Source: Ministeria vibrans ATCC 50519
Taxonomy: Eukaryota > Protista > Filasterea
DNA: 57,580 bases
Direction: 5' to 3'
Assembly (NCBI GenBank): GCA_943704425.1
Contig: CALSCP010000320.1
Span: 1-57,580, forward strand
Shown here: piece after piece, positions 13,801 through 54,227 of the stretch
Layout: every line of letters starts with the position of its first letter
How positions within the stretch are numbered: position 1 is the first letter of the stretch
The notes under the pieces: model-generated
The model's input: only the letters and a program-made list of their open reading frames with translations
Databases searched by the model: none
What the model was told of the DNA's origin: nothing
Made by a program: the position numbers and the translations under genes

Positions 13801-16800
13801 TACATGTGCACACATAAAGTCCCGGCGTGCCCTGGGCACACGTGCCACCATTGGTGCATGGACTCGACAAACACTCGTTGATGTCCACGGTGCACAGCGT
13901 GTCGGTGAATCCACTCGCACACACACAGGCAAACTGGCCGACCGCCGACTCAACACACGACGCACCATTGGCACACGGCGACGAGGCGCACTCGTCAATG
14001 TCAGACTCGCACTGAACACCCGCAAAGCCCGTCACACACGCACACTCAAAGTTGTCAATGCCATTCTCCGAACAAGAGCCTCCATTGGAGCAGGGAGACG
14101 ACGCACACTCGTTAATGTCATCTGCACACAGGGTACCGGTGTAGCCGGCGGCGCAAGTGCACGAAAATCCATCGACACCATCCACACAGGTTGCTCCATT
14201 CGTGCACGGCGATGAGGCACACTCGTCCACGTTCACCGCACACGTGTCGCCCGTGAAGCCGCTGGCACACACACACACAAACAAGTCCGAGGAGGATCCC
14301 TGTCCGCACGACGCACCATTCATGCACGGCGACGACGCACACTCGTCCACGTCCAAGTCGCAGTGCGTGCCCGTAAATCCCGCGGCACACACGCATCCAT
14401 AGCCGTCAACTCCATCGGTGCAGGTAGCACCGTTGGTGCACGGCGACGACTCGCACTCATCCACATTTTGGGCGCAGTGAACTCCAGTGAAACCCGATGC
14501 ACAAGTACACATGTAGCCATCAATAGAGTCGGTACATGTGGCACCGTTGGTGCACGGCAACGAGGCGCACTCGTCCACATCCGATTCGCATTGTGCACCA
14601 GTAAAACCCGACGCACACACACACTCAAACAGGTTGGGCGAGTTGCCTTGCGAACAAACACCTCCATTGGAGCACGGGGACGAGTCACACTCGTCGTCGT
14701 CCACCGTACAGAGTGTCCCTGAAAAGCCAGCGGCACACTGACACGTGAACATGTCTACGCCGTCGCTGCACGACGCACCATTGGCACACGGCGCCGAGGC
14801 GCACTCGTCCACATCTGTTTCGCACACTTCGCCGGTGAATCCCGATGCGCACACGCACACAAACAAATCGGGTTGCGATCCTTGCGAGCAAGTACCGCCA
14901 TTCGAGCAGGGCGTCGACGAGCACTCGTCAAAGTCCGACTCGCAGTGCACGCCCAGAAAGCCACTGGAACACTCACACTCGAAGAGGTTCGGAAGCGACC
15001 CTTGCGAACAGGTGCCGCCGTTCGAGCAAGGCGACGACAAGCACTCGTCCACATCCGATTCACACTGGTCGCCGACAAAGCCCGCGTGGCAGCTACATGT
15101 GTAGCCATCCAATGCGTCGGTACACGTGCCGGCGTTGTTGCACGGCGACGAGTCGCACTCGTTGATCTCCGACTCACAATTCTCACCGGTAAATCCGGAC
15201 GCACACGTGCACACGTACGAGCCTGGAACCACCTCGCCGCATGCACCGCCATTGGAGCACGGCGACGAGTCACACTCGACAATGTCCACCTCACAGTTGG
15301 AGCCAGTGTAGCCGCTAGCGCACGAGCACGTAAACGATGTAACGCCGTCAACACAAGTCGCACCGTTCTCACATGTGTTTGAAATGCAGTCGTCCATGTT
15401 GGTCTCGCACAGCGTGCCCGTGAAGCCAAAGGCGCAGCCACAGGCAAAAGCGTTGCCAGCGGACGGACCCGAAGTGAAGCGGACCACCGGTCGGGGGTTG
15501 CTCACACCTGAGGGGGGGAAGGGAGTAAGACTACAGGCAGACTCAGCGGTATCGGACGAGTAGCGTTGACGCTCCGACACGTAATTGGTGATGGCAACCG
15601 AAATGAACGAGCTGGTGCCCACCGTGTCATCTTCGTGGCAAAAGTTGAAGACGATTGAGCTGGTACCGTCCCACACGAGCGGCTGACGGAAAGGAACGGT
15701 ATTCCAGCCCACGACGGGCGTGTACGGTCCATCGTACAAGTCGGTTGTGCCCGGCGCCGTAGTGTCCACAAAGCCTCCGGAAAGATCCGTAAGCGTCGAC
15801 AGCTGACCAGTGATGGACATTGCGGAAAGCGGATCGCCCGCGACAGTCACATCAAAGGCAATAGAGTCAAGGCCGTCGCCGGCACTCAGACCAACGCCGG
15901 CAAGATCGCTGGCAAGGAAAATCACTTGCTCGCGGAATCGAATGTCGTCACGACGGAAAATGTTGAAATGATCCGTGGTCGTCACGGCAGTTCCAACCGT
16001 TGCCGTGACCACGAGGCCCGCCTCGGTCGGCTCAAAGCAAGTCGCGCCGTTGAAACAGGGCGAGGAAGAACACTCGTCCACATCGGACTCACATGTGGTG
16101 CCCGTGTAGCCGAGAGCACAAGCGCAGAAAAAATTATTGACGCGGTTAAGACAGGTGCCGCCGTTGGTGCACGGTGACGAAGCACACTCGTCCACGTCAG
16201 ACTCACAAGTGTCACCTGTGAATCCAGAGGCGCACTGACAACTAAACACGCCAAAAGCGTGCGAACAAGAACCGCCGTTGGTGCACGGCGACGAAGCACA
16301 CTCATCAATGTCCGACTCGCAAAAGTCACCGGTGAAACCAACGGAACACGAGCACGAATACAAGGTCACAAGGTCGACGCAGGTAGCACCGTTAACACAC
16401 GGACTTGACAAACAGTCGTCAATGTTGGTCTCACAATTCTCGCCGGTGAAGCCCGGCGGGCAGAGACACTCATACAACGCCACACTCGACTGGAAGCAGG
16501 TACCGTCATTCACACAAGGCGACGACACGCACTCATCCATGTCCGATTCGCACTCGTTGCCGGTGAATCCGACAGCGCACGTGCACGCATAAGCATCAAC
16601 CATGTCAGTACAAGTGCCACCATTGGTACAGGGCTGACTGAGACATTCGTCCAAGTCTGTCTCGCAGTTTGTACCCGTGTATCCGCTGGCACACTGGCAC
16701 TCGTACAAATCTGCCAAGAAGCTTTGCGCACAAGTGCCGCCGTTGGTGCACGGCGACGACGCACACTCGTCAATGTCGCTCTCGCACTGGACGCCAGTGA

Positions 16801-19800
16801 ATCCCGTCACACACGTGCACTCAAACAGATCTGCCGAGGCACCCTGCGAGCATGTGCCGCCGTTCGAGCAGGGCGACGAAGTACACTCATCAATGTCCGA
16901 CTCACAATGCGTGCCAGTAAAGCCCGTCACGCAAGTACACGAATACAGGTCGGCAGTGCCACTTTCGACACATGTTCCGCCGTTGGTACATGGCGACGAA
17001 GCACACTCGTCAATGTCGCTCTCGCACTGAACACCTGTGAACCCTGTCACGCAGGTGCACTCAAACAGATCGGGCGAGTTGCCCTCCGAGCAAGTCCCGC
17101 CGTTCGAGCACGGACTCGACGCGCACTCGTCCACATCCGACTCACAGTCGACACCGGTAAACCCAACAGGGCATGTACACTCGTACAGGTCGGGCGAGTT
17201 CCCTTGCGAACAAGTGCCGCCGTTCGAGCACGGAGCGGACTCACATTCGACAATGTCCGACTCGCATTGCGCTCCCGTAAATCCAGGAGCGCATGTACAG
17301 TCGAAAAAGTCTGGAGAGCTGCCCTGCGAGCATGTGCCACCGTTTGTGCACGGGGAGGAAAGGCACTCGTCGAGGTCCGTCTCACAGTTGACACCAGTGA
17401 AACCCTGAGCACAAGTGCACTCGTAGAGATTCGGCGAAGATCCATGCGAGCATGTGCCACCGTTGGCACATGGTGCCGAGTCGCATTCGGAAATATCCGA
17501 CTCGCACTGGTCGCCGGTGAAACCAACTGGACAAGAGCATAAGAAATGATCAAAAGACTCAGTACCGTGGAAGAAGCGAAAGTTGGGGCCAAATCGACCA
17601 GTTGCGCTCGAGCTGAGAACACAGTTGTTTGTGCCGGATGTGTCAGGGAAGAAGAGCGAGTTCACGTTGAGGTCGCAGCGCAGTCGTTGCCCATACGCAA
17701 TGGAGTCTGTGAAAAAAGACGACGTCTGCGCCTCGGCAACATAGCGATCGTTTGTGCCCGAGTTCATGTACAACGCAGATACGATGTATGTTCCGCCATT
17801 GACGAGGCTCACTGGCTGGGAGAGACTCGCATAGCGGAACCCGTTGATGAGTTCGTCCGACGACTGGACAGTGACAGACGCCACGAGTGTGCCACCTGTG
17901 GTCCACACACCAACCTCATGCGAGGCTACAAGACCATCCCCATCGAGATCAAAGATGCCCAACTGGGTAAGACTCACCGCACCCGCAGTCGTGAATGACC
18001 AGCCCACTTGGAAGCCCGAAGCTTCGCCACCCGTATTAAGGTCCGCGGGGCTGTACGATAACTGAGTCAGTGCCACCTGCGGCCCGACAAGACCATTGGA
18101 GCAGGAGCCACCGTTAGAACAGGGCGACGACGCGCATTCGTCAATGTCTGACTCACATAAAGTACCCGTAAAACCAGATGCACATGTGCAATCAAACAGG
18201 TCCGCCGAAGCACCCTGCGAGCATGTGCCGCCGTTCGAGCAGGGCGACGAAGTACACTCATCAATGTCCGACTCACAATGCGTGCCAGTAAAGCCTGTCA
18301 CGCAAGTACACGAATACAGGTCGGCGGTGCCACTTTCGACACATGTTCCGCCGTTGGTACATGGCGACGAAGCACACTCGTCAATGTCGCTCTCGCACTG
18401 AACACCTGTGAACCCTGTCACGCAGGTGCACTCAAACAANNNNNNNNGCCACTTTCGACACATGTTCCGCCGTTGGTGCATGGCGACGAAGCACACTCGT
18501 CAATGTCGCTCTCGCACTGAACACCTGTGAACCCTGTCACGCAGGTGCACTCAAACAAATCGGGCGAGTTGCCCTCCGAGCAAGTGCCACCGTTCGAGCA
18601 CGGACTTGACGAGCACTCATCGATGTCGCTTTCGCACTGGACGCCAGTGTATCCCGTCGCACAAGTACACTCAAACAGGTCTGCCGAAGCGCCCTGCAAG
18701 CATGTGCCACCGTTGGAGCATGGCAAAGAAGTACACTCATCAATGTCCGACTCACAATGCGTGCCGGTGAAGCCTGTCACGCAAGTACACGAGTACAAAT
18801 CAATTGTCCCACTCTCAACACAAGTACCGCCATTCGTGCAAGGCGACGAAACACATTCGTCAATGTCGGATTCGCAGCTATCTCCCGTGTAGCCGGCAGC
18901 GCAGGTGCACGTAAATCCGTTCGCACCATCGTTGCAGGTGCCACCATTTTGACACGGGCTCGATGCGCATTCGTCAATGTCAGTCTGGCACTGTTTGCCT
19001 TCGTATCCCGAGGCGCAGTCACAGGTAAAAAGAGGAACATGGCCGCTCACGACTAGGTCATCAATGTAAACTACACGCGAGGACGCGTACGACGTGAAGG
19101 AGCAGGATACAACCGCGGTCGAGCCAGTCATCGATGCCGTTTTTGTGATCCACTCGTCCGAGACAAAAGAAGTACCGTCCATATCGACAATAGTCGACAC
19201 GGTGCCACTCTCGCTCATCACCTGACAGGAAAATTGATCCTGCGACGAGTAGCTGAGGGAAAACGCAAAGAAAAACGACACGGAAATGTCGGCAGCACCT
19301 GCCGCTGAGACATCAATCTCCGTGAAGGTAACCGTTACGGCTCCCTTGCCATTGCCAATGGCAAACACACGGTTGCCATTCACTTCCATAATGCCAATCG
19401 GCGCAGACGAGATGCGTGAGTAAGAGCCCTGCGGTGCTGGTACAACATCCGTTTCGAAACCAATTTCGTCGGCGAGATCGGTCGCGACCGTGCTTTGAAC
19501 AGTGTTAAAGTTCAGGTAGTTTAGAAGCGCGTGGGGCGCAGCCGAAGCAAGTGAGGGGTTCTCTGCATACGTTCCTTGTGTGCTCACGGTCTCAGCATCA
19601 AACGATGTCGATGCAATCGTGGACACACCCTCGTTGACGCATGTCCCGCCGTTGCTACATGGCGACGAAGCACACTCGTTGACGTTGGTTTCGCATTGTG
19701 CGCCGGTAAATGCCGGTCGACAACTGCACTCAAACAGGTGGGGCGAGTTGCCCTGCGAGCAAGTACCGCCGTTCGAGCACGGACTCGACGCGCACTCGTC

Positions 19801-22800
19801 CACATCCGACTCACAGTCGACACCGGTGAAACCTGCGGCACAGGTGCACTCGTACAGGTCGGGCGAGTTGCCTTGCGAACAAGTGNNNNNNNNNAGCACG
19901 GACTCGACGCGCACTCGTCCACATCCGACTCACAGTCGACACCGGTGAAACCTGCGGCACAGGTGCACTCGTACAGGTCGGGCGAGTTGCCTTGCGAACA
20001 AGTACCGCCGTTAGAGCACGGAGCGGACTCACATTCGACAATGTCCGACTCGCAGTTCGTGCCAGTAAAGCCGGCGTGGCAGGAGCATGTGTACAAATCG
20101 GCCGTGCCAGATTCAACACAAGTACCGCCGTTGGTGCACGGCGACGACACACACTCGTCAATGTCGCTCTCGCACTGGACGCCAGTGAATCCCGTCACAC
20201 ACGTGCACTCAAACAGATCTGCCGAGGCACCCTGCGAGCATGTGCCGCCGTTCGAGCAGGGCGACGAAGTACACTCATCCATGTCCGACTCACAATGCGT
20301 GCCAGTAAAGCCCGTCACGCAAGTACACGAATACAAGTCGGCAGTGCCACTTTCGACACATGTTCCGCCGTTGGTACATGGCGACGAAGCACACTCGTCA
20401 ATGTCGCTCTCGCACTGAACACCTGTGAACCCTGTCACGCAGGTGCACTCAAACAAATCGGGCGAGTTGCCCTCCGAGCAAGTCCCGCCGTTCGAGCACG
20501 GACTCGACGCGCACTCGTCCACATCCGACTCACAGTCGACACCGGTAAACCCAACAGGGCATGTACACTCGTACAGGTTGGGCGAGTTGCCTTGCGAACA
20601 AGTGCCGCCGTTCGAGCACGGAGCGGACTCACACTCGACAATGTCCGACTCGCAGTTCGTGCCAGTAAAGCCGGCGTGGCAGGAGCATGTGTACAAATCG
20701 GCCGTGCCAGATTCAACACAAGTACCGCCGTTGGTGCACGGCGACGACGCACACTCGTCAATGTCGCTCTCGCACTGGACGCCAGTGAATCCCGTCACAC
20801 ACGTGCACTCAAACAGGTCCGCCGAGGCACCCTGCGAGCATGTGCCGCCGTTCGAGCAGGGCGACGAAGTACACTCATCAATGTCCGACTCGCAATTGAT
20901 GCCGGTGAATCCCGATACGCATGTACATGCATAGTCGGATGGGACCTCGGTGAATGTCACATCATCAATGAGCATGCGATCCGAATTGGAGGCGGTGTTA
21001 ACCGTGCAAGAGAGCGTTGCAGTGGTACCCTGAGGCACCACCGAGTACTCTACCCAATTTCCTGTGTCGAGACTCTCAGCCTCAATTTCCGTTCCAGTAT
21101 ACGAAAAAAGGGAGTAGACAGTGTTCGCCTGGTTCGTGACTCGACATTCAAGGGTGTCTGAGGCGTCCCAGATAGCGGGACGAATCGCAACAGTCAAGGA
21201 CACCACAACTGCATGGTCAAGGTCAATGTTCACAGGAGTAAATGTCACCGTGACGGGACTGCGGCCCTTGGCAAGGCTGAATACATGATTGCTGGACAAA
21301 AGTGGGTCACTCATTACACCAATAGAAGCACTGACAATTTGTTGATAATTGGAATCGGGAGTCACTGACGTCGAAAAGCCAAAGGTACCCACGGTGCTGA
21401 CAACAATATTGTTGCTGCCCCCTTGATTGAGCAGTTGATGAAAAGAAGGATTCGATGAGGGCTCCGTGTACGAATCGCCCACAGCCTCCGCGCTGAAGTC
21501 ATTCTGAGCAATGACACGCGGGGATTCCTCGACGCAAGTACCTCCATTAGTGCAGGGCGCTGAAGTGCACTCATCAATATCGCTCTCGCACGTATCACCA
21601 GTATGAGAAGCAAGACAATTGCAAGTGAATCGATCGGCACCATCAACACAAGTGCCATGGTTCACACATGGACTCGACGCGCACTCGTCCACGTCAGTCT
21701 CACACATGTCACCGACAAATCCACTGGGGCAAATACACTCAAACAGATCTGGTAAATTGCCTTGAGAACAAGTGCCGCCGTTCGAGCACGGAGCGGACTC
21801 ACACTCGTCAATGTCCGACTCGCAGTTCGTGCCAGTGAAGCCGGCGTGGCAGGAGCATGTGTACAAATCGGCCGTGCCAGATTCAACACAAGTACCGCCG
21901 TTGGTGCACGGCGACGACACACACTCGTCAATGTCGCTCTCGCACTGGACGCCAGTGAATCCCGTCACACACGTGCACTCAAACAGGNNNNNNNNNNNNN
22001 NNNNNNNNNNNNNNNNNNNNNNNNNNNNNNNNNNNNNNNNNNNNNNNNNNNNNNNNNNNNNNNNNNNNNNNNNNNNNNNNNCCGTCACGCAAGTACACGA
22101 ATACAGGTCGGCAGTGCCACTTTCGACACATGTTCCGCCGTTGGTACATGGCGACGAAGCACACTCGTCAATGTCGCTCTCGCACTGAACACCTGTGAAC
22201 CCTGTCACGCAGGTGCACTCAAACAGATCGGGCGAGTTGCCCTCCGAGCAAGTCCCGCCGTTCGAGCACGGACTCGACGCGCACTCGTCCACATCCGACT
22301 CACAGTCGACACCGGTGAAACCTGCGGCACAGGTGCACTCGTACAGGTCGGGCGAGTTGCCTTGCGAACAAGTGCCGCCATTCGAACACGGAGCGGACTC
22401 ACACTCGACAATGTCCGACTCGCAGTTCGTGCCAGTAAAGCCGGCGTGGCAGGAGCATGTGTACAAATCGGCCGTGCCAGATTCAACACAAGTACCGCCG
22501 TTGGTGCACGGCGACGACACACACTCGTCAATGTCGCTCTCGCACTGGACGCCAGTGAATCCCGTCACACACGTGCACTCAAACAGGTCCGCCGAGGCAC
22601 CCTGCGAGCATGTGCCGCCGTTCGAGCAGGGCGACGAAGTACACTCATCAATGTCCGACTCACAATGCGTGCCAGTAAAGCCCGTCACGCAAGTACACGA
22701 ATACAGGTCGGCAGTGCCACTTTCGACACATGTTCCGCCGTTGGTACATGGCGACGAAGCACACTCGTCAATGTCGCTCTCGCACTGAACACCTGTGAAC

Positions 22801-25800
22801 CCTGTCACGCAGGTGCACTCAAACAAATCGGGCGAGTTGCCTTCCGAGCAAGTGCCACCGTTCGAGCACGGACTTGACGAGCACTCATCGATGTCGCTTT
22901 CGCACTGGACGCCAGTGTATCCCGTCGCACAAGTACACTCAAACAGGTCTGCCGAAGCGCCCTGCAAGCATGTGCCACCGTTGGAGCATGGCAAAGAAGT
23001 ACACTCATCAATGTCCGACTCACAATGCGTGCCGGTGAAGCCTGTCACGCAAGTACACGAGTACAAATCAATTGTCCCACTCTCAACACAAGTACCGCCA
23101 TTCGTGCAAGGCGACGAAACACATTCGTCAATGTCGGATTCGCAGCTATCTCCCGTGTAGCCGGCAGCGCAGGTGCACGTAAATCCGTTCGCACCATCGT
23201 TGCAGGTGCCACCATTTTGACACGGGCTCGATGCGCATTCGTCAATGTCAGTCTGGCACTGTTTGCCTTCGTATCCCGAGGCGCAGTCACAGGTAAAAAG
23301 AGGAACATGGCCGCTCACGACTAGGTCATCAATGTAAACTACACGCGAGGACGCGTACGACGTGAAGGAGCAGGATACAACCGCGGTCGAGCCAGTCATC
23401 GATGCCGTTTTTGTGATCCACTCGTCCGAGACAAAAGAAGTACCGTCCATATCGACAATAGTCGACACGGTGCCACTCTCGCTCATCACCTGACAGGAAA
23501 ATTGATCCTGCGACGAGTAGCTGAGGGAAAACGCAAAGAAAAACGACACGGAAATGTCGGCAGCACCTGCCGCTGAGACATCAATCTCCGTGAAGGTAAC
23601 CGTTACGGCTCCCTTGCCATTGCCAATGGCAAACACACGGTTGCCATTCACTTCCATAATGCCAATCGGCGCAGACGAGATGCGTGAGTAAGAGCCCTGC
23701 GGTGCTGGTACAACATCCGTTTCGAAACCAATTTCGTCGGCGAGATCGGTCGCGACCGTGCTTTGAACAGTGTTAAAGTTCAGGTAGTTTAGAAGCGCGT
23801 GGGGCGCAGCCGAAGCAAGTGAGGGGTTCTCTGCATACGTTCCTTGTGTGCTCACGGTCTCAGCATCAAACGATGTCGATGCAATCGTGGACACACCCTC
23901 GTTGACGCATGTCCCGCCGTTGCTACATGGCGACGAAGCACACTCGTTGACGTTGGTTTCGCATTGTGCGCCGGTAAATGCCGGTCGACAACTGCACTCA
24001 AACAGGTGGGGCGAGTTGCCCTGCGAGCAAGTACCGCCGTTCGAGCACGGACTCGACGCGCACTCGTCCACATCCGACTCACAGTCGACACCGGTGAAAC
24101 CTGCGGCACAGGTGCACTCGTACAGGTCGGGCGAGTTGCCTTGCGAACAAGTGCCNNNNNNNNNNNNNNNNNNNNNNNNNCATTCGACAATGTCCGACTC
24201 GCAGTTCGTGCCAGTAAAGCCGGCGTGGCAGGAGCATGTGTACAAATCGGCCGTGCCAGATTCAACACAAGTACCGCCGTTGGTGCACGGCGACGACACA
24301 CACTCGTCAATGTCGCTCTCGCACTGGACGCCAGTGAATCCCGTCACACACGTGCACTCAAACAGGTCCGCCGAGGCACCCTGCGAGCATGTGCCGCCGT
24401 TCGAGCAGGGCGACGAAGTACACTCATCAATGTCCGACTCACAATGCGTGCCAGTAAAGCCTGTCACGCAAGTACACGAATACAGGTCGGCGGTGCCACT
24501 TTCGACACATGTTCCGCCGTTGGTACATGGCGACGAAGCACACTCGTCAATGTCGCTCTCGCACTGAACACCTGTGAACCCTGTCACGCAGGTGCACTCA
24601 AACAGATCGGGCGAGTTGCCCTGCGAGCAAGTCCCGCCGTTCGAGCACGGACTCGACGCGCACTCGTCCACATCCGACTCACAGTCGACACCGGTGAAAC
24701 CTGCGGCACAGGTGCACTCGTACAGGTTGGGCGAGTTGCCTTGCGAACAAGTGCCGCCATTCGAGCACGGAGCGGACTCACACTCGACAATGTCCGACTC
24801 GCAGTTCGTGCCAGTAAAGCCGGCGTGGCAGGAGCATGTGTACAAATCGGCCGTGCCAGATTCAACACAAGTACCGCCGTTGGTGCACGGCGACGACACA
24901 CACTCGTCAATGTCGCTCTCGCACTGGACGCCAGTGAATCCCGTCACACACGTGCACTCAAACAGGTCCGCCGAGGCACCCTGCGAGCATGTGCCGCCGT
25001 TCGAGCAGGGCGACGAAGTACACTCATCAATGTCCGACTCACAATGCGTGCCAGTAAAGCCCGTCACGCAAGTACACGAATACAGGTCGGCGGTGCCACT
25101 TTCGACACATGTTCCGCCGTTGGTACATGGCGACGAAGCACACTCGTCAATGTCGCTCTCGCACTGAACACCTGTGAACCCTGTCACGCAGGTGCACTCA
25201 AACAAATCGGGCGAACTGCCCTCCGAGCAAGTCCCGCCGTTCGAGCACGGACTCGACGCGCACTCGTCCACATCCGACTCACAATCGACACCGGTGAAAC
25301 CTGCGGCACAGGTGCACTCGTACAGGTTGGGCGAGTTGCCTTGCGAACAAGTGCCGCCGTTCGAGCACGGAGCGGACTCGCACTCGACAATGTCCGACTC
25401 GCAGTTCGTGCCAGTAAAGCCGGCGTGGCAGGAGCATGTGTACAAATCAATTGTCCCACTCTCAACACAAGTACCGCCGTTGGTGCACGGCGACGACACA
25501 CACTCGTCAATGTCGCTCTCGCACTGGACACCAGTAAATCCCGTCACACACGTGCACTCAAACAGGTCCGCCGAGGCACCCTGCGAGCATGTACCGCCGT
25601 TCGAGCAGGGCGACGAAGTACACTCATCCATGTCCGACTCACAATGCGTGCCAGTAAAGCCCGTCACGCAAGTACACGAGTACTCGTTTGCGTTGGAACC
25701 GTCGACACAGGTAGCACCGTTAGAACAAGGCGAGCTGGCACATTCGTCAATGTCTGACTCGCATCGGGAACCCGTAAAGCCAGTGTGGCATTTGCACAGA

Positions 25801-27015: not shown

Positions 27016-27050
27016 CGCGACGCCCCCTGCCCTTTTCTTCGCTGCTTTGT

Positions 27051-27060
27051 CTATATATAG
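27051..27060 (-). promoter_or_regulatory. TATA-like box upstream of receptor A
   Basis: CTATATATAG about 40 bp upstream of ATG 27015. Confidence 0.4.
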
Positions 27061-33700: not shown

Positions 33701-35029
33701 TCGTCTCGCACACGTCACCCGTGAAGCCTTCGGCACAGTAGCATGCGTACGAGTCGAACAAGGTCGGAGCAAGTGCAAATCGCATCACCGGGCGCGGGTT
33801 GGACACGAAGTCGAAGGGGTCGAGTGTGCACGCGTCCAAGGCCGCATTGTCGTCAAACTTGATACGTTCGCCCACAAACGACAGAGTGGTGTCGACCGCC
33901 ACGACGCTGTTTACGCCCGTCGCCGTATCCGAGTGACACATATCAATCACCACCGAAGAGGTGCCGTCCCACACGAGTGGGACAGCAAAATCAATCGTGT
34001 TCCAGCCAACCACGGGTGTGTAGGTGCCACTGAAGACCTCCTGGAAGGCCGACGAGTCAACAAAGCCAGCCGAGAGACTGGTCAGCGTCGACAGTGACAC
34101 GCGCACTGTCAAACTGTTGAGTGGATCGCCTGCAATGGAGACACTCAAGGCAGCCGAGGTGATGAGGCCACCGGCCGTGATACCGGCAGACATCAGCTCG
34201 CCTGCCTGGAAGAGCAATTGATCGCGCTGACGAATGCTGGCTCGACGGAAGGGAGAAAACGCATTGGTTTGGGTTGACTCAACGCCAAGGGTGTGAAGTG
34301 TAGGCATCGCAAGAGTCGACGCCTCGGCAAAACACGTGCCGGAATTCTGGCAGGGATTCGACGCACACTCGTCAATGTCCGACTCACAAAGGTCTCCCGT
34401 CGACCCAACGTTGCAGCTGCACGAAAACCCATCCGCAGCGTCCACACACGTACCGCCATTGGAACAGGGGCTCGAGGCGCACTCGTCAATGTCGGTCTCG
34501 CACACACTTCCCGTGTAGCCAGGCGCGCAAGTGCAAGAGAACACACCGACTCCTTCGTTACACGTCGCTCCATTGCGGCACGGCAGACTGACACACTCGA
34601 CAAGCTCGGTCTGGCATGCCTTGCCGGTGTAGGCACTGGTGCAGTCACACACATACGAAATCACGCCATCAAGGCAGGTACCGCCGTTGACGCAGGGATT
34701 CGAGTCGCAATCGTCAAGATTCGTCTCGCACAAGTTTCCGGTAAAACCCGGTCGACAGAGACACGAAAAGACGGCAAGACTCGGCTCGAAGCACGTTCCA
34801 TCGTTGTAGCATGGCGACGATGCACACTCCGCCACGTCATTCTCGCACTGGTCTCCCTCGTAGCCGTCGATGCACACGCACACAAAAGAGTCCACTCCAT
34901 CCACACACGTTCCACCGTTGACACACGGTTCCGATTCGCACTGTGTAAAAGACAAGGCGTATTTACATAAGAATTTAAAAAATAATAATATAATAAACTT
35001 CATAATAATAACAATAATAATATTATTAT

Positions 35030-35065
<36 letters not shown>

Positions 35066-35119
35066 AATAACAACAACAATAATAACAACAACAACAACAA
35101 TAATAACAACAACAACAAC

Positions 35120-35152
<33 letters not shown>

Positions 35153-35894
35153 TTAATTTTATTATTATTATTATTATCTATTATTATCAATTTTCTCGTA
35201 AGGGGGGTTTTTGGGTACCTCGTTGATGTTAGTTTCACACAGAGTGCCAGAGAAGCCACTGGAACACAGACAAAGGTATGTTTCGGGGACGGTGCCCTGT
35301 GTGACACAGGTGGCACCGTTAGTGCAGGGAGACGAAATACACACGTTGATGAGCGTCTCGCAATGCTCGCCGGTGTAGCCAAGGGAGCAGGTGCAGACAA
35401 ACAAGTCAGGTCCAACCGACTGATCATTGCACGTGCCACCATTGCTACAAGGACTTGAGACACACTCGGAAATATCCAGTTCGCAAGCGTCACCGGTGTA
35501 GCCGGTTGCACACGCACAAGAAAACGCTGCAAACTGGTCTGTGCATGTCCCACCGTTGTTGCAAGGGGACGACTCGCACTCGTCAGCAAGTGATTCGCAC
35601 TGCACTCCAGTGTAGCCGGCAACACACAAACATGCAAAGCTATCAGGTGCATCAACACTGCAGGTGGCTCCGTTGATACAAGGATTCGACAAACACGTGT
35701 CCACCTGCGTCTCACATGCACTGCCTTCAAATCCCGCAGCACACACACAGTCGTACGCTGTGCCACCCGCATTATCCACACATGTCGCTCCATTGGTACA
35801 CGGGCTCGAGAGACACTGCAATTATACGGCAAAAAGTTCAAAGAAATTAATAAACTGTTGTTGATAGTAATATAATAATAATAATAATAATAAC

Positions 35895-35925
<31 letters not shown>

Positions 35926-38900
35926 TAGAATAACAATAGACTAGCAAGTAAAAACAACAATGATTTACCTCATCAATGTCAGATTCACACATATCGCCAG
36001 TGTATCCAGCACGACATAGACAGTGGAACACACCCGGTTGTGCAGCCAGCTCAAAGCACGTACCGCCGTTGGTACACGGCGAGGAGAGACACTCGACTAC
36101 GGCAACGTCGCATGATTCTCCGGTAAAACCAGAAACGCACTCACACGTGTGAGTACCCAACCCGTTGACACAAGTGGCACCGTTCACACAGGGCGACGAT
36201 GCACATGTGTCCACCTTGATCTCGCACTGGTCGCCCGAATAGCCGGTGGGACACGAGCAGAGATAATCGTTGGCTCCCGTGAAGGTCTCCAGAAATTGCA
36301 TGTTAGGCCCAAAGCGACCAATACCAACCTGGGGCGTGCTGTAAAGACAGTTTGCGACGGACGGGAAAGCAAGGGTTCCCTGGTTGTTGCACAGAAGCTT
36401 CTGGTCAAAAGCAACGTTGTTCTGAGTGAGCGTCGTCGCCTCAAACACATACTGGTCAGAAATACCAGCGTTGGCGTAAAGCGCCGCCAACACGTAGGTG
36501 GTATTTTGTGCGAGGGCAACTGGCGCAGCCAATTCAACCCAGCGGAACGAGTCGGCAAGAGGATCCGACGTGGCGATCGTCGCAGTTGCCATCATGACTT
36601 CGTCTGACACACGGTAGAGCGCCACTTCGTGACTGCCGTCAAAGCCGTCGTCCTGGTAGTCAAACAGTCCCAAGTGGGTCAGCGTGACACCGCTTGAGAT
36701 CACTTCAAACTGCCAGCCGGTGATGCGAGGCGTCGTCTCGGTGCCCGTGTTAATGCCAGTCTGGTCAAAGGTCACCTGCGAGACAACAGGCAACGACGTG
36801 CCCCCAGTACTGCACACACCACCGTTGGTGCAGGGCGACGAGACACACTCGTCAATATCCGACTCACACACGTCGCCAGTGAAGCCTGCCGCACAGACAC
36901 ACTGAAACCCGTCCACAACGTCGATACAGGAGGCACCATTGCTACAGGGCGACGAACTACACTCGTCCACATTGGTTTCGCACACGTCGCCGGTGAAACC
37001 CGAATGACAGGTGCAAGTAAACAGGTTGATAGTGGCACTCTCAACGCACGTTCCTGCATTGTGGCACGGCGACGAGGCACACTCATCAACGTTCGTCTCG
37101 CATTGAGTGCCTGTAAAACCCGCGACACACGTACAATCAAACAAGTTGGGTCCTGTGTGGTCGTCACACGAGCCGCCGTTAGCACATGGCGAGGAGAGAC
37201 ACTCATCAACGTCCTGCTCACACAGCGAGCCGCTAAAGCCGGTTGCACAGGTACACTCCCACAGATTGGCCGCGGTGCCCTGCGAGCATGTACCTCCATT
37301 GGTGCATGGTGACGAGATACATTCATCTACATCGGACTCGCACAAGGAGCCAGTAAAGCCAGCCACGCACGTACACGAGTACAAATCGGCATTGCCACTC
37401 TCGACGCATGTACCGCCATTACTGCAAGGCGAGCTCGCGCACTCGTCAATGTCGGACTCACAATGAACACCCGTATAGCCAGCAACACACGTGCAACTGT
37501 AAGCATCAACTGCGTCGGTACAAGTACCTCCATTGGTGCACGGAGACGACAGGCACTACAGAAGAAAAAGAAGCGTTTCATAAAAATCAAAATCAAATCA
37601 TTGTGTTCCAATTTTGTCAACAGTATTGAATACAATTCTTTTTTTCAGTTTGTTTTTTGTACCTCATCGAGCTCGGTTTCACATTCACTTCCTGTAAAGC
37701 CTGAAGCACAGGTACAGTCGTAGGCGGGAACAAAAATGGAACGGAACGTAAAGGATGGACCAACACGAGCGGTGTCGCCAGCAATGTCACAAGAGGTGCA
37801 AATGTCGCTGCTCAGCAAATTATCACAGAAGCAGGCGGAGTCAAGGGTAAAAAGCCCGACGGGAGCGGCAGGGAAGGTAAGTGCAAGTGAGGGGCCACGC
37901 AAATACTGGTCTTGACCACTAGAGGCCCAGCCCGTGACAATGTAGGTGCCGGCAGCAAGCTCCAGTGAACCCGTCAGCGTCATGGTCGAACGGAAGTTGG
38001 GTGCAGCCGAGTCGGTGGCGGGGTCGCTGGGTGAGACTGTGCCCGAGGCGTACACGGTGCCCGAGGTATCCGTAATGCGAATTGGATGCGCCTCGTTGAT
38101 GGTCGAATCGCCACTTCCCAGGCTCAACTCAACATCATACCACGACAGAGACTTGATCAGAATGGGTGCGCTCAGAGTAAACTTCCAGCCAATCGAGCGG
38201 GACGATGCTCCCGCCGACGGATTCAGAGTGGACGACGACATGGAGGCAATGGCGGGTTTCGTCGCCAAATCAGGCAAGTTTTCACTGCATGTTGCTCCAT
38301 TACTGCAAGGCACAGAGGCACACTAAAATTGAAATGAGAAAAAATTGTATTAAATTTTTTTGCTATTAATTATTATAGTTTTTTGTTGTTTTTTTGTTGT
38401 ACTGTACCTCTTCAATGTCCGATTCGCACTGGGCACCGGTAAAACCATCAAGACAAGCACATTCAAAGAAACCACCAAAAGCGCCTTGTGAACAAGTTCC
38501 AAGATTGGCACATGGGCTTGAGGCACACTCGTTGATGTCACTTTCACAGTGGGTGCCTGTGAAACCGCCGCTGCAGGTGCACGAGTAACTGTCCACTTGG
38601 TCAACACAGGTCGCACCGTTCGTACACGGAACTGAAACACACTCATCGATGTCTGTCTCGCAGTTTGTTCCAGTGAATCCGGCGCCACAGGTGCACGTGT
38701 ACAAGTTGGCGGTGCCAGATTCAACACAAGTACCGCCGTTTGTGCACGGCGACGACGCACACTCGTCAATGTCGCTCTCGCACTGAACGCCAGTAAAGCC
38801 CGAGACACAATTACACAAGAACAAGTCAGCAACAGCACCATTCACGCACGATCCACCATTTGAGCAGGGCGACGAGGAACACTCGTCAGTTCCACTCTCA

Positions 38901-41900
38901 CAATTGTCACCGGTGAAGCCGCTCACGCAAGTGCATGTGTGAAAGTTTGCAATAAACACATCGGTACAGGTGCCACCGTTGTGGCACGGGTTGCTAAAGC
39001 ATTCGTCAAGATTGGCCTGGCATTGAGTGCCTGAAAAGCCGTCGACGCACGCACACTCAAACAAATCGGGCGAACTGCCCTCCGAGCAAGTCCCGCCGTT
39101 CGAGCACGGACTCGACGCGCACTCGTCCACATCCGACTCACAGTCGACACCGGTGAAACCTGCGGCACAGGTGCACTCGTACAGGTCGGGCGAGTTGCCT
39201 TGCGAACAAGTACCGCCGTTAGAGCACGGAGCGGACTCACATTCGACAATGTCCGACTCGCAGTTCGTGCCAGTAAAGCCGGCGTGGCAGGAGCATGTGT
39301 ACAAATCGGCCGTGCCAGATTCAACACAAGTACCGCCGTTGGTGCACGGCGACNNNNNNTTCGACAATGTCCGACTCGCAGTTCGTGCCAGTAAAGCCGG
39401 CGTGGCAGGAGCATGTGTACAAATCGGCCGTGCCAGATTCAACACAAGTACCGCCGTTGGTGCACGGCGACGACGCACACTCGTCAATGTCGCTCTCGCA
39501 CTGGACGCCAGTGAATCCCGTCACACACGTGCACTCAAACAGGTCCGCCGAAGCACCCTGCGAGCATGTGCCGCCGTTCGAGCAGGGCGACGAAGTACAC
39601 TCATCAATGTCCGACTCACAATGCGTGCCAGTAAAGCCCGTCACGCAAGTACACGAATACAGGTCGGCGGTGCCACTTTCGACACATGTTCCGCCATTAG
39701 TGCACGGCGACGAAGCACACTCGTCAATGTCGCTCTCGCACTGAACACCTGTGAACCCTGTCACGCAGGTGCACTCAAACAAATCGGGCGAGTTGCCCTC
39801 CGAGCAAGTCCCGCCGTTCGAGCACGGACTCGACGCGCACTCGTCCACATCCGACTCACAGTCGACACCGGTAAACCCAACAGGGCATGTACACTCGTAC
39901 AGGTCGGGCGAGTTCCCTTGCGAACAAGTGCCGCCGTTCGAGCACGGAGCGGACTCACACTCGACAATGTCCGACTCGCAGTTCGTGCCAGTAAAGCCGG
40001 CGTGGCAGGAGCATGTGTACAAATCGGCCGTGCCAGATTCAACACAAGTACCGCCATTGGTGCACGGCGACGACACACACTCGTCAATGTTGGTCTCGCA
40101 CTGGACGCCAGTGAATCCCGTCACACACGTGCACTCAAACAGATCTGCCGAGGCACCCTGCGAGCATGTGCCGCCGTTCGAGCAGGGCGACGAAGTACAC
40201 TCATCCATGTCCGACTCACAATGCGTGCCAGTAAAGCCCGTCACGCAAGTACACGAATACAGGTCGGCAGTGCCACTTTCGACACACGTGCCGCCGTTGG
40301 TACATGGCGACGAAGCACACTCGTCAATGTCGCTCTCGCAATGGACACCCGTGAATCCGGTCACGCATGTGCAGCTGTAGTTATCGACATCGTCCGTGCA
40401 TGTGCCACCGTTAGTGCATGGCGATGAGGCGCATTCGTCAATGTCTGTCTCGCAAAAATCGCCAGTGTAACCAGCGTGACAGGTGCAAGAAAGTACCTCG
40501 TCACCGCCAATGCGAAAGGTAAACACGGGTCCAAAAATGGACGATCCCTGTGTCGGCGTAGAGCACGAAGCACAGGCGGCAGCTGCCGAGGCGACCCCGT
40601 CACACAAGCAAGCCTTGGTCAGGGTAATTTGAGAGGCAAAATCGACTGAGGTCGAGCCTGTCAAGTACTGATCAGGTCCCGCCGGAACGTGGCCCAGCAG
40701 TCGGTAGGTTCCTGCAGGCAGAATGCTCGTGCCCACAAGAGAGGTGGCCACACGCTCAGCTTGGCTATTGACCGCGTCCGATACCTTGACGGTGGCGGTC
40801 AGGAGCGTGTTTCCCGCGCTGTCATCGATTCGCACCGCATGCTCCAGGTCCATATCGCCATCGAGGTTGGCGTGGATGTCGACGTCAAGCCAACCCAGAC
40901 CGGTGATGGTGATTTGGGTCGAAACGGTAAACTCCCAGCCGACAAGTTGATTCGTGGTGGGTGCTGCGCTCACGTCCGACAGGGACGAGATAAGTGAGGA
41001 GAAAGCAGAAGCGCTCGCTTGGGTCAGGGGCGATGTTGTTTCGGAACACGTGGCGCCATTGGAGCACGGTGATGAGTCACAAATATCAATGAGATGACAG
41101 AGGGTGCCAGTGAAACCGTTGGCACACACACACGAAAACATGTTGACGGCGTCGACGCACGTTCCGCCATTCTGGCACGGTGCCGAAAGGCACTCATCCA
41201 TGTTCGTCTCACAGTTGTCGCCGGTGAAGCCGCTGTGACAACTGCACGAGTAAGCATCCACAGCTTCGACACACGTTCCGGCGTTGGTGCACGGTGACGA
41301 GGCACACTCATCGATGTCACTTTCGCAGTGGGTACCGGTGAAACCCGACGCGCATGTGCACGTGTAGCCATCGACAGCATCAACACACGTGCCGCCCGCG
41401 GTGCACGGACTCGAAAGACACTCGTCTTGGTTGGTCTCGCAGTGTAGACCGGTAAAACCCGACGCACATGTGCAAGTATATGAATCAACCATGTCGTTGC
41501 AAGAGGCACCGTTGGTGCATGGCGACGAGGCGCACTCGTCAACCTCCGACTCACACATGTCGCCAACAAATCCGCTAGCACAGTTGCAAGAGTACGAATC
41601 AAATTGATCCACACACGTACCACCATTGGAGCACGGCGAAGAAGAACACTAAAGAGGAGGGCGGGGTTGTATAAAGTGTCTGTGTTCTTCCTGTTCTATC
41701 GTATTACCTCATTGACGAGCGATTCACAGTTGAAGCCAGTATAGCCAGACACACAGGCACACACAAATGTGTCCGGGGAGTTTGACTCAGAACAAGAGCC
41801 CCCGTTACTACACGGTGAAGAGACGCACTATAAAAAGAGTTTCAGAATGAAAAACAATAGCATTATACTCTCTATAATACATCTATTTTTATTCCTGTTC

Positions 41901-44900
41901 TCTATTAATTATTTCTTATTATGCTATTATTGGCTTACTTCATCCACGTCTGACTCACAGAAAACACCGGTAAAGCCAGCGGGGCAGGAGCAAGAGAACA
42001 GGTCAACGGTGTTCTCGTTGACGCAGGTGGCACCATTAGTGCAAGGACTTGAGAGGCACTCGTCAAGATCCGCCTCGCACTGTGTGCCGGTGTAGCCTGC
42101 GGTACAGGTGCACTCAAAGTGGTTGGGTGTAAACGCACCAATGTGCAACTGAATTGTCGGTCCAAAGTAACCATAGTCACTGGTTGCCTGCGCCGAAGTA
42201 CACGCCGGATTGGCGGGGTACTCAAGGGCGGAGACGTCACAGCTAATTTTGTTGGCGCTCGTAATGGCACCATCAAATGTAATCGACGAGGCTGTCTGAA
42301 TGGCACGATCCGACTGCCCGGCACCCGTATACAGCGCCACCAGGTGATATGTGCGTCCGTTGACAAGGGCCACTTCAGAGCCGTAGGCGAACGTGCGGTA
42401 GCGGAAGCTGTCCGAGCTCAACGGCAAAAACGTACCGGCGTACACCGTTGTTTGCGCCACAGCCAGTTGTGTCGTCGTGTCGTACACGGCAACTTCATGG
42501 TCGCCAGCAAGACCGTCACCAAGCTGGTCGAAGACACCAAGTGCCGAGAGGTACACATCCGCCGTGCCCACTGTGAACGTCCAGCCTACCATTCGCGATT
42601 GTGGGTTGCTCTCGGCCTCGCTGAAGCTCAGACCAGTCGCGCCCTCCAGAGGTCCCGTGAAGCCCAGGCCACAGGTGCCGCCGTTGACACAGGGGTTGCT
42701 ATCGCAATCGTCTGTTTGCGTCTCGCACAGCGTGCCAGTGAAGGCAGTGGTACACGCACACGTGTATGACTCAACTTGATCGACACACGAGCCGCCGTTC
42801 TGACAGGGCGCAGAGACACAGTCGTCAATGTTGGTCTCGCATAGAATGCCCACAAAGCCTGCGGCGCACGTGCAGGTGAACAGGTCGACCGAATCCGTTT
42901 GGCAAGTGGCGCCATTGAGACAGGGCATCGATGTGCATTCGTCAATGTCTTGACCACAGTCCACTCCAGTGAACCCCGACGCACAAGCACAAATAAACTC
43001 CCCTGGCGAGTTTGTACACGTAGCACCGTTGCTGCACGGCGACGAAGAGCACTACAAAAGCAAAAAAAAGAAAAGAAAAAAAAAAAAAGAAAGAGAGGTG
43101 TAAGACGCGCACAATACGTTTCTCGTTTGGAAGGCGTACCTCGTCCATGTCCGATTCACAAAGAGTTCCAGTGAACCCGACAGCACATGTACACTCGTAC
43201 GAGGCGACACCATCAGTGCACGTGGCGCCATTGGTACAAGGCGACGAAGCACACTGGGAGAAGAACGAAATTATTAACATGCTTTTTTTGTTTGTTTTGC
43301 CACACACACTCACTCACCTCATCAATGTCCGACTCACACTGGTCACCAACAAAACCATCGGCACACGCACAGCTGAATACGTTTATTCCGTGGGAACAGG
43401 TGGCGCCGTTGGAGCAGGGATCAGACTGACATTCGTCAACGTCTGCTTGACACTTTGAGCCGGAAAATCCCGCTGGACAAGCACAAGTATAGCCATCAAC
43501 GGCATCCGTGCAGCTACCTCCATTGGTACATGGCGACGAGGCACACTAAACGTGAATTCGAAAAAGTGCAATGAGCGATCAGCTAAAAAATTATTCATAA
43601 TATTATTGTTTTCACCTCGTCAAAGTCCGTCTCGCAAAGAACACCAGTGTATCCATTGTGGCAAGAACAAACAAACCCGTCGGGAGAGGCTGCCTCGGCG
43701 CACGAGGCGGTGCCCAATGGAGCACAGGGGCTCGAGGCGCATTCGTCAATGTCTGATTCACACTGGACTCCCGTAAAGCCTGACGCGCAACTACAAGCAA
43801 ACTCGTCAACGAAAGTTGTTGCACAAGTTCCGCCATTGGAGCAAGGCGATGAGGCGCACTACAAAGATAATGGTACAAGGGAATGAGTGTTAATATTGAA
43901 GAAACTTATTTAAGAGTGTTTGTCCGACCTCATCAATGTCACTTTCACAGTCAGTTCCAGTGAAGCCCGAGGCGCAAGTACAAGAGTAGAAAGCAACCAG
44001 GTCATTACAGGTTGCTCCATTTGTGCACGGTGACGATGAGCACTAAAGCATAAAATATTATTAAAATTATTTTAATGCTCTGCAAAGAACATGAATTTCC
44101 AAACAATATAAATACCTCGTCAATTTCGGTTTCGCACTGATTGCCATCGAAACCAAGGGCACAATTGCAGAGGTACGAGTTGACGCTGTCCTCTACACAC
44201 GAAGCACCGTTGCTGCATGGTGAGGAGGCACACTCGTCAACGTCTGACTCGCATTGAACGCCAGTGTAGCCAACGATGCAAGTGCACTCGAAGAGGTTGG
44301 AAGACGTTCCTTGCGAGCAAGTGCCTCCATTGGTGCAGGGTGATGAGGCACACTCATCCATGTCAGATTCGCAATTCGTGCCAGTAAAGCCTGGTGGGCA
44401 GGCACACGTGAAACTGTTTACATTGTCGGTGCACACGCCTCCGTTGGCACACGGCCCCGAGCCACACTCGTCAATGTCCGTCTCGCACATGTCACCCGCG
44501 TAGCCGGCAACACATGAGCACATGAAAGAGTCAAACTGACCATTCTCCGAGCATGTGCCACCGTTGGTACACGGTGACGAGGCACACTCGTCAATGTCAG
44601 ATTCGCACTGGTCGCCCGTGAAGCCGTTGGCACAGACACAAGCGTACGTGCTCGGCGGACCTTGGCTGCACGTTCCTCCGTTCGTGCAGGGCGACGAATC
44701 GCACTCATTGATGTCCACATCGCAAACTGTGTTTGTGAATCCTGCTTGACACGTGCACAAATACCCGTCAAGAGCATCGGTGCACGTGGCGCCGTTGGCA
44801 CATGGTGAGGAGGCGCACTACAAAAATTTCGGTTAAATTTCTTGACTTCAACGCATTCCGCTTGTGTGGCTTGAGCCGTTGGTTGTGGCGTGTGTCTGTC

Positions 44901-46610
44901 TGTGTGCGTGTAAATGTATGTATGTGTGTGCATGTGTGTCAAGAACGATGATACCTCGTCGATTTCGCTCTCGCATTTGATGCCCACAAACCCGGCGGCA
45001 CACGCACAGGTGAAGCTATCAACCAAATTGGTACAGGAGGCTCCATTGGTGCAAGGTGATGAGGCACACTCATTAATGTCTGACTCGCACGTAGTGCCCG
45101 TGTATCCGTTCACACAAGTGCACGTAAACTGGTCAACTCCCTCGATGCATGTCGCACCATTAGTACACGGGCTTGAAGCACACTGCATTGAAGACGTAGA
45201 AAGAAAAGTCATTAATACTAATAATAATAATAATTTACCATTGGCAATAAAGGGTACCTCATCAACTTCCGATTCGCACTGGGAACCGGTAAAGCCACTT
45301 GCACAGGTGCACTCGTATGTGTCGATTGTCGGTGTGGTGCACGTCGCACCATTGCTGCACGGCGAGGAGGCGCACTCGTCAATGTCCGACTCGCAAAGCA
45401 CGCCAGTGTAGCCGGGAGCGCAAGTGCATTCAAAGACGTTCTTGTCAAAGACTTTCTCGCCAAACTTGGTGATGACGCGGAACTGCTGGAAGTTGTTGGC
45501 GTTGGCAAGAAGCGAACAGGCGCTGTCGGAGAGAACGTCACTCACGCCAGTCGCCATGCCGGTAAACGAGATGGTGGGGTCCACCTGGGCGACTGAATCG
45601 ACGGTACCAACGGTGGGCTCCTCGTGACACGTGGCAACGACCACATTGCTGACGCCGTCCCACTCGAACGGAGTTGAAAAGTCGATGGTGGTCCACGGGC
45701 TGGTGGGTGTGACAGGACCCGAATAGACTTGGGTCGCCTGGCTCTCGTCGATAAACGTACTACTGAGCGTCGTCGTGGTCGTGTGCATGATTTTGATGTT
45801 CATGTTGGTGAGGGGATCGCCCGCTGTGGAAATAGAGTAGCTGATGGACGCGAGAAAGGCGCCGGGGGTGATGCCCGACAGCTCCGATGCGAGAAACAAC
45901 GATTGGTCACGGTAGCGGAGGTTTCGTCGTCGAAGCGGACAGTACTCCTCTGTGGAGACCTCGGTGCCGCCTGCAGGGACCGCAACTTCCGTGGCTGAAA
46001 GCAGCGGCTCAGCACACGTCGCGCCGTTTTGACATGGGATCGACGAGCACTCGTCGATGTCCGTTTCACAGAGCATTCCCGTGTATCCCGCGGCACACTG
46101 GCAAGTGTAGTCTGAGGCCCCCTCGACACACGTAGCTCCAAACAGACATGGGCTGCTGTCGCACTCGAGCGCTGCAAGAAAAGCAGTAAGACGGTGAAAA
46201 AAAAAAGAAGAAAAAAAAAAAGAAGAAAAGGTGCGAAAGAAAAGGGGCAGAGAGGTGTGAGGGCCGTCGACTGGACGGTAACGAATGACGCACAGACGAC
46301 ACCCATGCCTCTGAGGTTTGGTCACAGATGTCCGTTTGGATTGTGGTTTGGGATCTGTGCTCTGCAAAAGTCAAGACGGCCAAATATAGAGCGGCTCAAA
46401 TCGCCGATGGGGTGTGCTCGTTTGCAAGAGGAGGTGCATGGGGCAATGAGAGGGGGTCGTTTGAGAAGTGATTTCGATGGAGCATCGGCGAGAGGACAGC
46501 GCGAGAGTCCCGATCGCTCGATCGACGCCGTCATGGGGGGTTTTCGTACCGGCCGATGAGGCCACAAGGGCTGCAAGAAGGGCAAAAGTAACGACCAGAT
46601 GGCCTCTCAT
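27773..46610 (-). CDS. Giant single-pass receptor B (~5,600 aa, 17 exons), paralog of A: signal peptide, ~90 EGF repeats with 6 inserted beta-domains, Cys repeat, ZU5-like domain with RRRR, TM, ~640 aa tail (coiled coil, poly-Pro, RVxF, SILK)
   Basis: ATG at 46610 gives [20 protein letters not shown], then a phase-1 intron 46172-46549; 15 phase-0 introns at 45183-45257, 44818-44954, 44043-44115, 43859-43928, 43546-43615, 43254-43317, 43052-43139, 41828-41938, 41649-41707, 38323-38407, 37556-37662, 35816-35968, 34941-35218, 32196-32294, 32015-32075; [25 protein letters not shown]; C-terminus FGDDEYL. Confidence 0.88.
35000..35180. repeat. (CAA)n/(TAA)n microsatellite in a receptor B intron
   Basis: Direct reading. 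Confidence 0.9.
39050..40340 (-). repeat. About two copies of the 600-bp EGF unit shared with receptor A
   Basis: Nucleotide strings essentially identical to 19900-20890. Confidence 0.88.

Positions 46611-47175: not shown

Positions 47176-54227
<7,052 letters not shown>

Follow-up and report, generated by a model that had tools for sequence, protein, structure and literature searches.

How can a protein rod made of tandem epidermal growth factor (EGF) modules carry large domains of other kinds, and what might such domains do there? The question is raised by a 57,580-nt stretch of Ministeria vibrans ATCC 50519 (Filasterea; assembly GCA_943704425.1, contig CALSCP010000320.1, positions 1 to 57,580 of the forward strand), which we call the window. 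It contains two adjacent giant genes, here named A and B; they are arranged head to tail, both on the minus strand, and encode EGF-rich membrane proteins. An initial annotation of these letters had reported that 11 large domains in the two proteins are all inserted at the same place, between the third and fourth cysteines (Cys3 and Cys4) of an EGF. Here, we describe these nested domains, their relatives, and their predicted structures, and then weigh what they may do.

Eleven domains nested between Cys3 and Cys4 of EGF modules

Translation of every coordinate pair confirms the reported site: all 11 segments split an EGF between Cys3 and Cys4, with C-x4-C-x5-C directly before the insert and CxCxxG[FY]xGxxC directly after it (Table 1). 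The inserts are 184-205 codons long and none contains a stop. As assembled, A carries five and B six, irregularly spaced along ~95 EGFs. Elsewhere in the rods, the EGF period of ~114-120 nt is broken only by introns or N gaps; the rods thus contain no non-EGF segment that is not nested.

The host modules are ordinary EGFs with six cysteines (Cx4Cx5C...CxCx8C), each followed directly by the next EGF. In the ordinary EGFs of the window, the Cys3-Cys4 loop has 8-10 residues. An aromatic residue (F/Y) stands two positions before Cys4 in 165 of 172 ordinary EGFs and, genome-wide, in 38 of 48 split EGFs (41 of 48 counting W), and D/E/Q/N stands two positions after Cys3 in 157 of the 172. A D-x-D-E motif is common before Cys1, and the form xDxDE precedes it in 78 of the 172. 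These features agree with the calcium-binding EGF (cbEGF) consensus (six cysteines, D/N-x-D/N-E/Q, D/N/E/Q after Cys3, aromatic residue), by which the modules are predicted to be cbEGFs. Because the split EGFs keep the consensus residues around the insert, what each insert replaces is limited to a few residues that form the tip of the Cys3-Cys4 hairpin, in line with the location first proposed.

Inserts are retained in spliced transcripts of gene B

Four RNA or DNA runs were aligned to positions 33600-39300 of gene B. Two RNA contigs, X5 (from polyA RNA-seq, 4920 nt) and X1 (5736 nt), align to 33600-34940, 35219-35815, 35969-37555, 37663-38322, and 38408-38766. In both, four introns are gone and the inserts at 33744-34331, 36260-36811, and 37717-38286 are whole, which verifies for these three the supposition that the inserts are exonic. 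The DNA run X15 is unspliced over 35937-38740. All four introns are GT..AG introns in phase 0 and fall between the Glu that ends the linker and Cys1 of the next EGF; none lies at a Cys3/Cys4 junction. One exon (37663-38322, 660 nt) is a symmetric cassette that consists of exactly one split EGF with its insert. Phase-0 introns at Glu|Cys1 flank such a unit and allow it to be copied as a cassette. The other eight inserts also have open frames and belong to the families described below.

Both RNA contigs also align a second, diverged piece at 37440-37555, with many substitutions and small indels. This piece is probably a paralogous EGF repeat at the contig end rather than the product of editing.

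Three insert families with bacterial-type relatives

The inserts form three families, I to III, which are unrelated in sequence, as had been claimed: hhalign probabilities are at most 1.3% between families and 94-99.7% within them. Identity among paralogs is 20-45%. A clustering by BLAST single linkage (E 1e-4) had joined families I and II through a 43-residue C-terminal match of two longer inserts; this joint family was ruled out by hhalign (I versus II, probability at most 0.6%).

Family II is DUF4082 (PF13313; Pfam E 8e-12). Two copies in the window pass the gathering cut-off of 28.4 bits (17540-18100 with 45.8 bits and 36260-36811 with 30.2 bits); the other three score below it and are joined to the family by hhalign (IIa versus IIb, 99.7%). 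In all, 11 of 20 paralogs match the model. The bacterial-type DUF4082 proteins P0063 and P0065 share 53% and 37% identity over 32% and 79% of the query, respectively, and their domain is not nested. In the literature searched, DUF4082 is mentioned in passing only.

Family I matched no model in Pfam or NCBIfam. It aligns by hhalign (99.4%) with residues 110-275 of P0061, a bacterial-type protein with a GEVED domain further on. In P0061 and in P0062, also bacterial-type, the family I domain lies upstream of GEVED and has both conserved cysteines of the family.

Family III matched no model in Pfam. A profile search of 1.84 billion representatives found 60 relatives, most of them proteins of 230-260 residues made up of a signal peptide, the domain, and a PEP-CTERM anchor, and mostly bacterial; PEP-CTERM was present in 17 of 29 aligned relatives. 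Among the relatives P0002-P0060, the domain is also found fused to lamin-tail and endonuclease/exonuclease/phosphatase domains.

Clear sequence relatives of the three families are bacterial DUF4082, PEP-CTERM, and GEVED surface proteins, in which the domain is terminal or arranged in series and never inside an EGF, whereas here it is nested. Families II and III here have invariant cysteine pairs, which the bacterial-type relatives examined lack. Judged from sequence, the bacterial-type relatives together with the extra cysteine pairs fit a scenario in which surface modules of bacteria were captured and then adapted. Searches elsewhere added little: NCBIfam gave nothing useful for seven inserts, profiles of the three families retrieved no relative from PDB sequences, and the ESM Atlas yielded unnamed clusters only, from which cleaved adhesin (family III) and phage or Bacteroidota hypothetical proteins (family I) were taken as leads only.

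Structure models of the nested units

An AlphaFold2 model of an EGF, a split EGF with its family I insert, and a further EGF (304 residues; alignment of 16 paralogs) has a mean predicted local distance difference test (pLDDT) score of 86.6. The top VIA-align match of this unit is Notch1 EGF11-13 (2vj3; Z 11.2, root-mean-square deviation 3.4 A); the alignment spans model residues 2-304 and takes in 113 of the 120 residues. Foldseek TM-scores against Notch1 EGF11-13 entries, with the Notch chain as the basis of normalisation, are 0.64-0.79. The model of family I thus has both half-EGFs closed into one EGF, and the three EGFs keep the register of a rod. The insert itself (model residues 61-247) has CBM-like and lectin-like matches at Z 8-10, among them the CBM-like N-domain of acetylxylan esterase, phage baseplate and tail-tip proteins, the lectin-like domain of Cwp84, and PHR domains.

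In the family III model, most of the insert (residues 60-255) has a pLDDT above 90. Its fold matches at Z 11-13 are CBM4, CBM22, CBM61, MAM, reelin subrepeats, and cleaved adhesin, and Foldseek returns CBM4-2, the EphA2 ligand-binding domain, MAM, and CBM15 1gny. As modelled, family I is a CBM/lectin-like sandwich and family III a jelly roll of the CBM4/MAM/Eph type. CBM-like sandwiches are very common, with 166 chains at Z >=8, and these matches indicate class, not function.

Spread across the genome and beyond

The two genes are part of a larger set. In the 29.7-Mb genome, family I has 19 matches and family II has 31; family III is found in gene A only. Genome-wide, there are at least 48 distinct nested inserts (at least 120 residues, flanked by both EGF halves) on 13 contigs. 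Most of the matches that the nesting pattern missed are also nested, with variant motifs or an intron after Cys3, and one copy of DUF4082 seems to lie N-terminally without being nested. Three further nested inserts were not joined to families I-III by BLAST: L035:2293-3006 (132 residues), L050:529-996 (132 residues), and L034:2020-2913 (192 residues). For this reason, the genome seems, by sequence comparison, to hold more than three nested families.

Outside this genome, the best family III match is P0001, an EGF-rich, eukaryote-like protein of 865 residues encoded by JGI metagenome contig L053 (profile E 1e-21). It has one clear site, a family III domain within an EGF near the start. A second copy near the end, where the protein stops two residues after Cys4, probably also lies in an EGF. 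P0001 is the only nested example found from another source. Word-based homologue searches returned two, three, and one relevant proteins, numbers that say little about the spread of nesting, and a metagenome locus scan with a single family I protein gave no relative among 454 pattern matches.

Layout of genes A and B and effects of assembly gaps

Proteins A and B share one domain order: signal peptide, EGF rod, Cys-rich piece, juxtamembrane region, transmembrane helix, and tail. Counted by their Cys4-Cys6 motifs, the rods as assembled contain ~98 EGFs in A and ~94 in B. The Cys-rich piece resembles TNFR and ephrin receptors (weak Pfam matches to TNFR and Ephrin_rec_like). The juxtamembrane region is conserved over ~150 residues, and neither it nor the long cytoplasmic tail matched anything in Pfam. 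Within this region, both proteins have a conserved G-G-x-R-R-R-R-A-T motif (the RRRR motif of Table 1), a possible furin-type shedding site. Gene A has a single intron, near its 5' end, and its frame shifts only at N gaps; gene B contains many introns in phase 0.

N runs interrupt gene A at 18440-18447, 19886-19894, 21988-22081, and 24156-24180, and gene B at 39354-39359. The gaps at 21988-22081 and 24156-24180 fall within near-identical EGF repeats of 120 nt. The closest insert is 455 nt away from the first and 250 nt from the second, and the EGF period is preserved over both in the assembly, where successive Cys4 motifs are 240 and 120 nt apart; these gaps leave all inserts and host half-EGFs untouched and make the number of EGFs uncertain. 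At each of the gaps 18440-18447 and 19886-19894 there is a one-base frame shift. Between these two gaps lies a block of 1438 nt (18448-19885) with four EGFs and the family III insert 19024-19638, which differs from 22716-24153, at an offset of 4268 nt, in 2 of 1438 bases. This block may be a very recent duplicate, or an assembly, haplotig, or scaffolding duplicate, of the copy that holds the insert 23292-23906. The count of 11 inserts thus holds for the assembly as it stands, with 10 of them certainly distinct.

Many copies of a ~480-nt super-repeat, composed of four EGFs whose Cys4-Cys6 motifs end in ...THC, ...VQC, ...TNC, and ...VDC, occupy 19900-25700 in A, and others are found at 39413-40373 in B; their amino acids are nearly identical throughout. 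The assembly gaps can be attributed to this near-identity, which also suggests recent amplification or gene conversion between A and B. Elsewhere in the window, an EGF-rich receptor tyrosine kinase gene (47811-53872, plus strand, with a PK_Tyr_Ser-Thr match) is broken by N gaps and stands head to head with B, and two more genes with EGFs are present, one with a receptor L domain at 75-1964 and one at 55937-56926.

Table 1. Nested domains, introns, and other features of genes A and B (positions in the window).
Feature	Position	Strand	Insert	Family	Insert length (aa)	Remark
Split EGF	15407..16072	minus	15443-16036	I	198	gene A
Split EGF	17504..18136	minus	17540-18100	II (DUF4082)	187	gene A
Split EGF	18988..19674	minus	19024-19638	III	205	gene A, in gap-bounded near-duplicate block
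Split EGF	20892..21569	minus	20928-21533	III	202	gene A
Split EGF	23256..23942	minus	23292-23906	III	205	gene A
Split EGF	33708..34367	minus	33744-34331	I	196	gene B, kept in spliced RNA contigs
Split EGF	36224..36847	minus	36260-36811	II	184	gene B, kept in spliced RNA contigs
Cassette exon	37663..38322	minus	37717-38286	II	190	gene B, kept in spliced RNA contigs
Split EGF	40452..41081	minus	40488-41045	II	186	gene B
Split EGF	42077..42706	minus	42113-42670	II	186	gene B
Split EGF	45393..46049	minus	45429-46013	I	195	second EGF of protein B
Intron of B	34941..35218	minus				GT..AG, phase 0, missing from RNA contigs
Intron of B	35816-35968	minus				GT..AG, phase 0, missing from RNA contigs
Intron of B	37556-37662	minus				GT..AG, phase 0, missing from RNA contigs
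Intron of B	38323-38407	minus				GT..AG, phase 0, missing from RNA contigs
Gene A	10886..27015	minus				ATG at 27015, stop at 10886
Gene B	27773..46610	minus				ATG at 46610, stop at 27773
Transmembrane helix of A	11558..11623	minus				
Transmembrane helix of B	29699..29767	minus				
RRRR motif of A	11690-11725					~20 residues outside the membrane
RRRR motif of B	29831-29866					~20 residues outside the membrane

Binding heads or structural elements

We read A and B as real, expressed type I membrane proteins whose EGF rods display the nested domains, or heads, as binding or adhesion sites, and we give this reading a probability of about 0.6. In each unit, a beta-sandwich of ~190 residues would replace a few residues at the Cys3-Cys4 hairpin tip, and the host EGF would still close through disulfides 1-3, 2-4, and 5-6 and keep the register of the EGFs on either side. 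Such a composite unit of split EGF and insert, bounded by the phase-0 introns, would have been copied as a cassette and multiplied across the genome. The rod would then hold its heads at set heights above the membrane, where they would act as ligand-binding or adhesion sites. We infer that the heads are displayed sideways on a rigid calcium-binding EGF rod, and their ligands are most likely glycans or surfaces.

Several observations weigh against this reading. RNA supports three of the 11 inserts, all in gene B, and the collapsed repeats and N gaps of gene A make its EGF number and one of its inserts uncertain. The expectation that the disulfide core stays intact is borne out by the family I model, which is EGF-like with a continuous rod; it does not extend to family III, where the EGF flanks have pLDDT below 55, so that EGF closure is modelled for family I only. 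An acidic motif of the D-G-D type, conserved in the bacterial relatives of family III, is lost in the gene A copies, and a ligand site shared with those relatives is therefore not implied. Finally, the term "binding head" may itself be wrong because the closest analogues, the L4 and LF domains of laminin, have no known ligand (PMC5338690).

These last points lead to the strongest alternative, that the inserts are structural and serve as hinges, spacers, glycosylation platforms, or sites of lateral self-association from which a surface coat is built; a role of this kind is suspected for L4 and LF. Decades of study have assigned L4 and LF no ligand, and laminin shows a bend at the position of L4 (PMC5338690); the loss of the acidic motif and the irregular spacing of the inserts along the rods also speak for such a role. 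On the other hand, the recruitment of three unrelated lectin-like families, their strong expansion, and the 20-45% identity among paralogs fit diversifying recognition better, and the modelled rod is straight and superposable on Notch EGF11-13. On balance, we consider a purely structural role unlikely, though it deserves to be kept in view ahead of the other alternatives.

Relation to laminin L4 and other EGF rods

The initial annotation had recognised no counterpart of this architecture in animal proteins. This must be corrected: in laminin, an LE module carries the globular L4 domain between its Cys3 and Cys4 (Pulido et al., PMC5338690), so the design principle is already catalogued. The building principle proposed here for A and B would be the same as in laminin and perlecan, whose LE rods carry L4 domains. 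A CBM35-like sandwich is common to L4 and LF, and the regularity of the LE array is not disturbed by the LF insert (Pulido et al., PMC5338690); the crystal structure of LF shows rod packing undisturbed, and the same is predicted for L4 (PMC5338690). The L4 fold is CBM/MAM/Eph-like, and its closest neighbour in the CASP11 account is CBM15 1gny (PMC4834066). The L4-in-LE units in the alpha and gamma chains of laminin and in perlecan domain III, like the units here, consist of a beta-sandwich of ~180-200 residues placed at Cys3-Cys4 in a long tandem rod, and in the models families I and III would have a CBM-like beta-sandwich fold, as L4 does.

The differences are equally clear. The host of L4 is an LE module with eight cysteines (1-3, 2-4, 5-6, 7-8), whereas the hosts here are EGFs with six, mostly of the calcium-binding type. 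The insert of L4-in-LE is Laminin_B, whereas here it is DUF4082 or a member of two unnamed families, and none of the inserts or paralogs matched Laminin_B (PF00052), even with E values up to 1 admitted. In contrast to laminin and perlecan, there are up to six inserts per protein here, the proteins are membrane-anchored, the organism is unicellular, and the family has undergone massive expansion; unlike in laminin, no LN domain or coiled coil is seen in A or B. What is new relative to laminin and perlecan is thus the nesting in an ordinary EGF with six cysteines, the other insert families, and the many copies. We found no description of a domain nested in an ordinary EGF in a literature search that was itself weak.

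Could the nested units be surviving relatives of the ancestor of this basement-membrane module, homologous with L4-in-LE rather than analogous to it? The insertion site is the same (PMC5338690), the family III matches to CBM15 1gny, the Eph ligand-binding domain, and MAM are also neighbours of L4 (PMC4834066), the family I unit weakly matches laminin beta2 LE5-LF-LE6 (Foldseek E 2e-3), and one DUF4082 insert has a weak match to LAMININ_IV_B (E 0.13). We nevertheless find homology improbable: besides the absence of Laminin_B matches among the inserts and the different cysteine pattern of the hosts, Laminin_B had no match in the whole genome (the control genomes were silent too), CBM-like sandwiches are very common, and the clear sequence relatives of the inserts are bacterial-type proteins.

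Least of all do we credit a gene-model or assembly artefact, by which introns, foreign (bacterial) DNA, or misassembly would account for the inserts and the mature proteins would be plain EGF rods: the N gaps, gap-bound frame shifts, and near-identical insert-bearing block of gene A and the mostly bacterial-type relatives might invite it, but all 11 inserts are open in frame with both EGF halves, the true introns lie at Glu|Cys1 and not at Cys3/Cys4, the same nesting recurs on 13 contigs and on the metagenome contig encoding P0001, and the idea is refuted outright for the three inserts kept in contigs free of true introns, one of these being the polyA RNA-seq contig.

Other EGF-containing proteins offer partial likenesses to the display rods proposed here. 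In the laminin beta LF unit (LE5-LF-LE6, 5lf2), a CBM35-like sandwich likewise sits in an EGF-type rod with the register kept, but it comes after an LE that is truncated and has no 7-8 disulfide, includes an extra helical region, and is not in the Cys3-Cys4 loop (PMC5338690). Compared with cbEGF rods of the Notch/fibrillin type, the EGFs here show 41-45% identity and have the D-x-D-E and aromatic consensus, and the family I unit superposes on Notch1 EGF11-13 and EGF20-24. The label "Notch-like" goes too far, since the C-terminal 513 and 933 residues contain none of the Notch parts (LNR, NOD, ankyrin) by Pfam, only EGF and the weak TNFR/Ephrin_rec_like matches. The EGFs of Notch and fibrillin are not known to contain a nested domain. 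Reelin repeats also combine EGFs with CBM-like jelly rolls, and reelin subrepeats match family III at Z 11-11.8; in reelin, however, the EGF lies between two sandwich subrepeats, whereas here the sandwich lies inside the EGF.

Implications of nested EGF domains in Ministeria

As far as the literature searched extends, Cys3-Cys4 nesting in EGF-type modules had previously been found only for the LE modules of laminin and perlecan. Here, the same solution is present in ordinary calcium-binding-type EGFs of a unicellular eukaryote, with three unrelated families and a copy number of at least 48. EGF rods may therefore be generally permissive to display at the hairpin tip. The units are natural, compact cassettes of an EGF and a head, one of them a single 660-nt exon, that can be used for studies of structure and binding. 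They may also show how modules of the basement-membrane type are assembled and how bacterial surface domains are taken up into eukaryotic receptors.

More tentatively, the genes may belong to a combinatorial surface-recognition system, in which bacterial-derived lectin-like domains were captured at least three times and spread as phase-0 cassettes among dozens of giant receptors, diversifying the recognition of prey, microbes, or partners. We regard this extension as speculative and clearly less secure than the display of binding heads itself. If it were true, Ministeria would provide a living model for the origin of the L4-in-LE module of laminin and perlecan.

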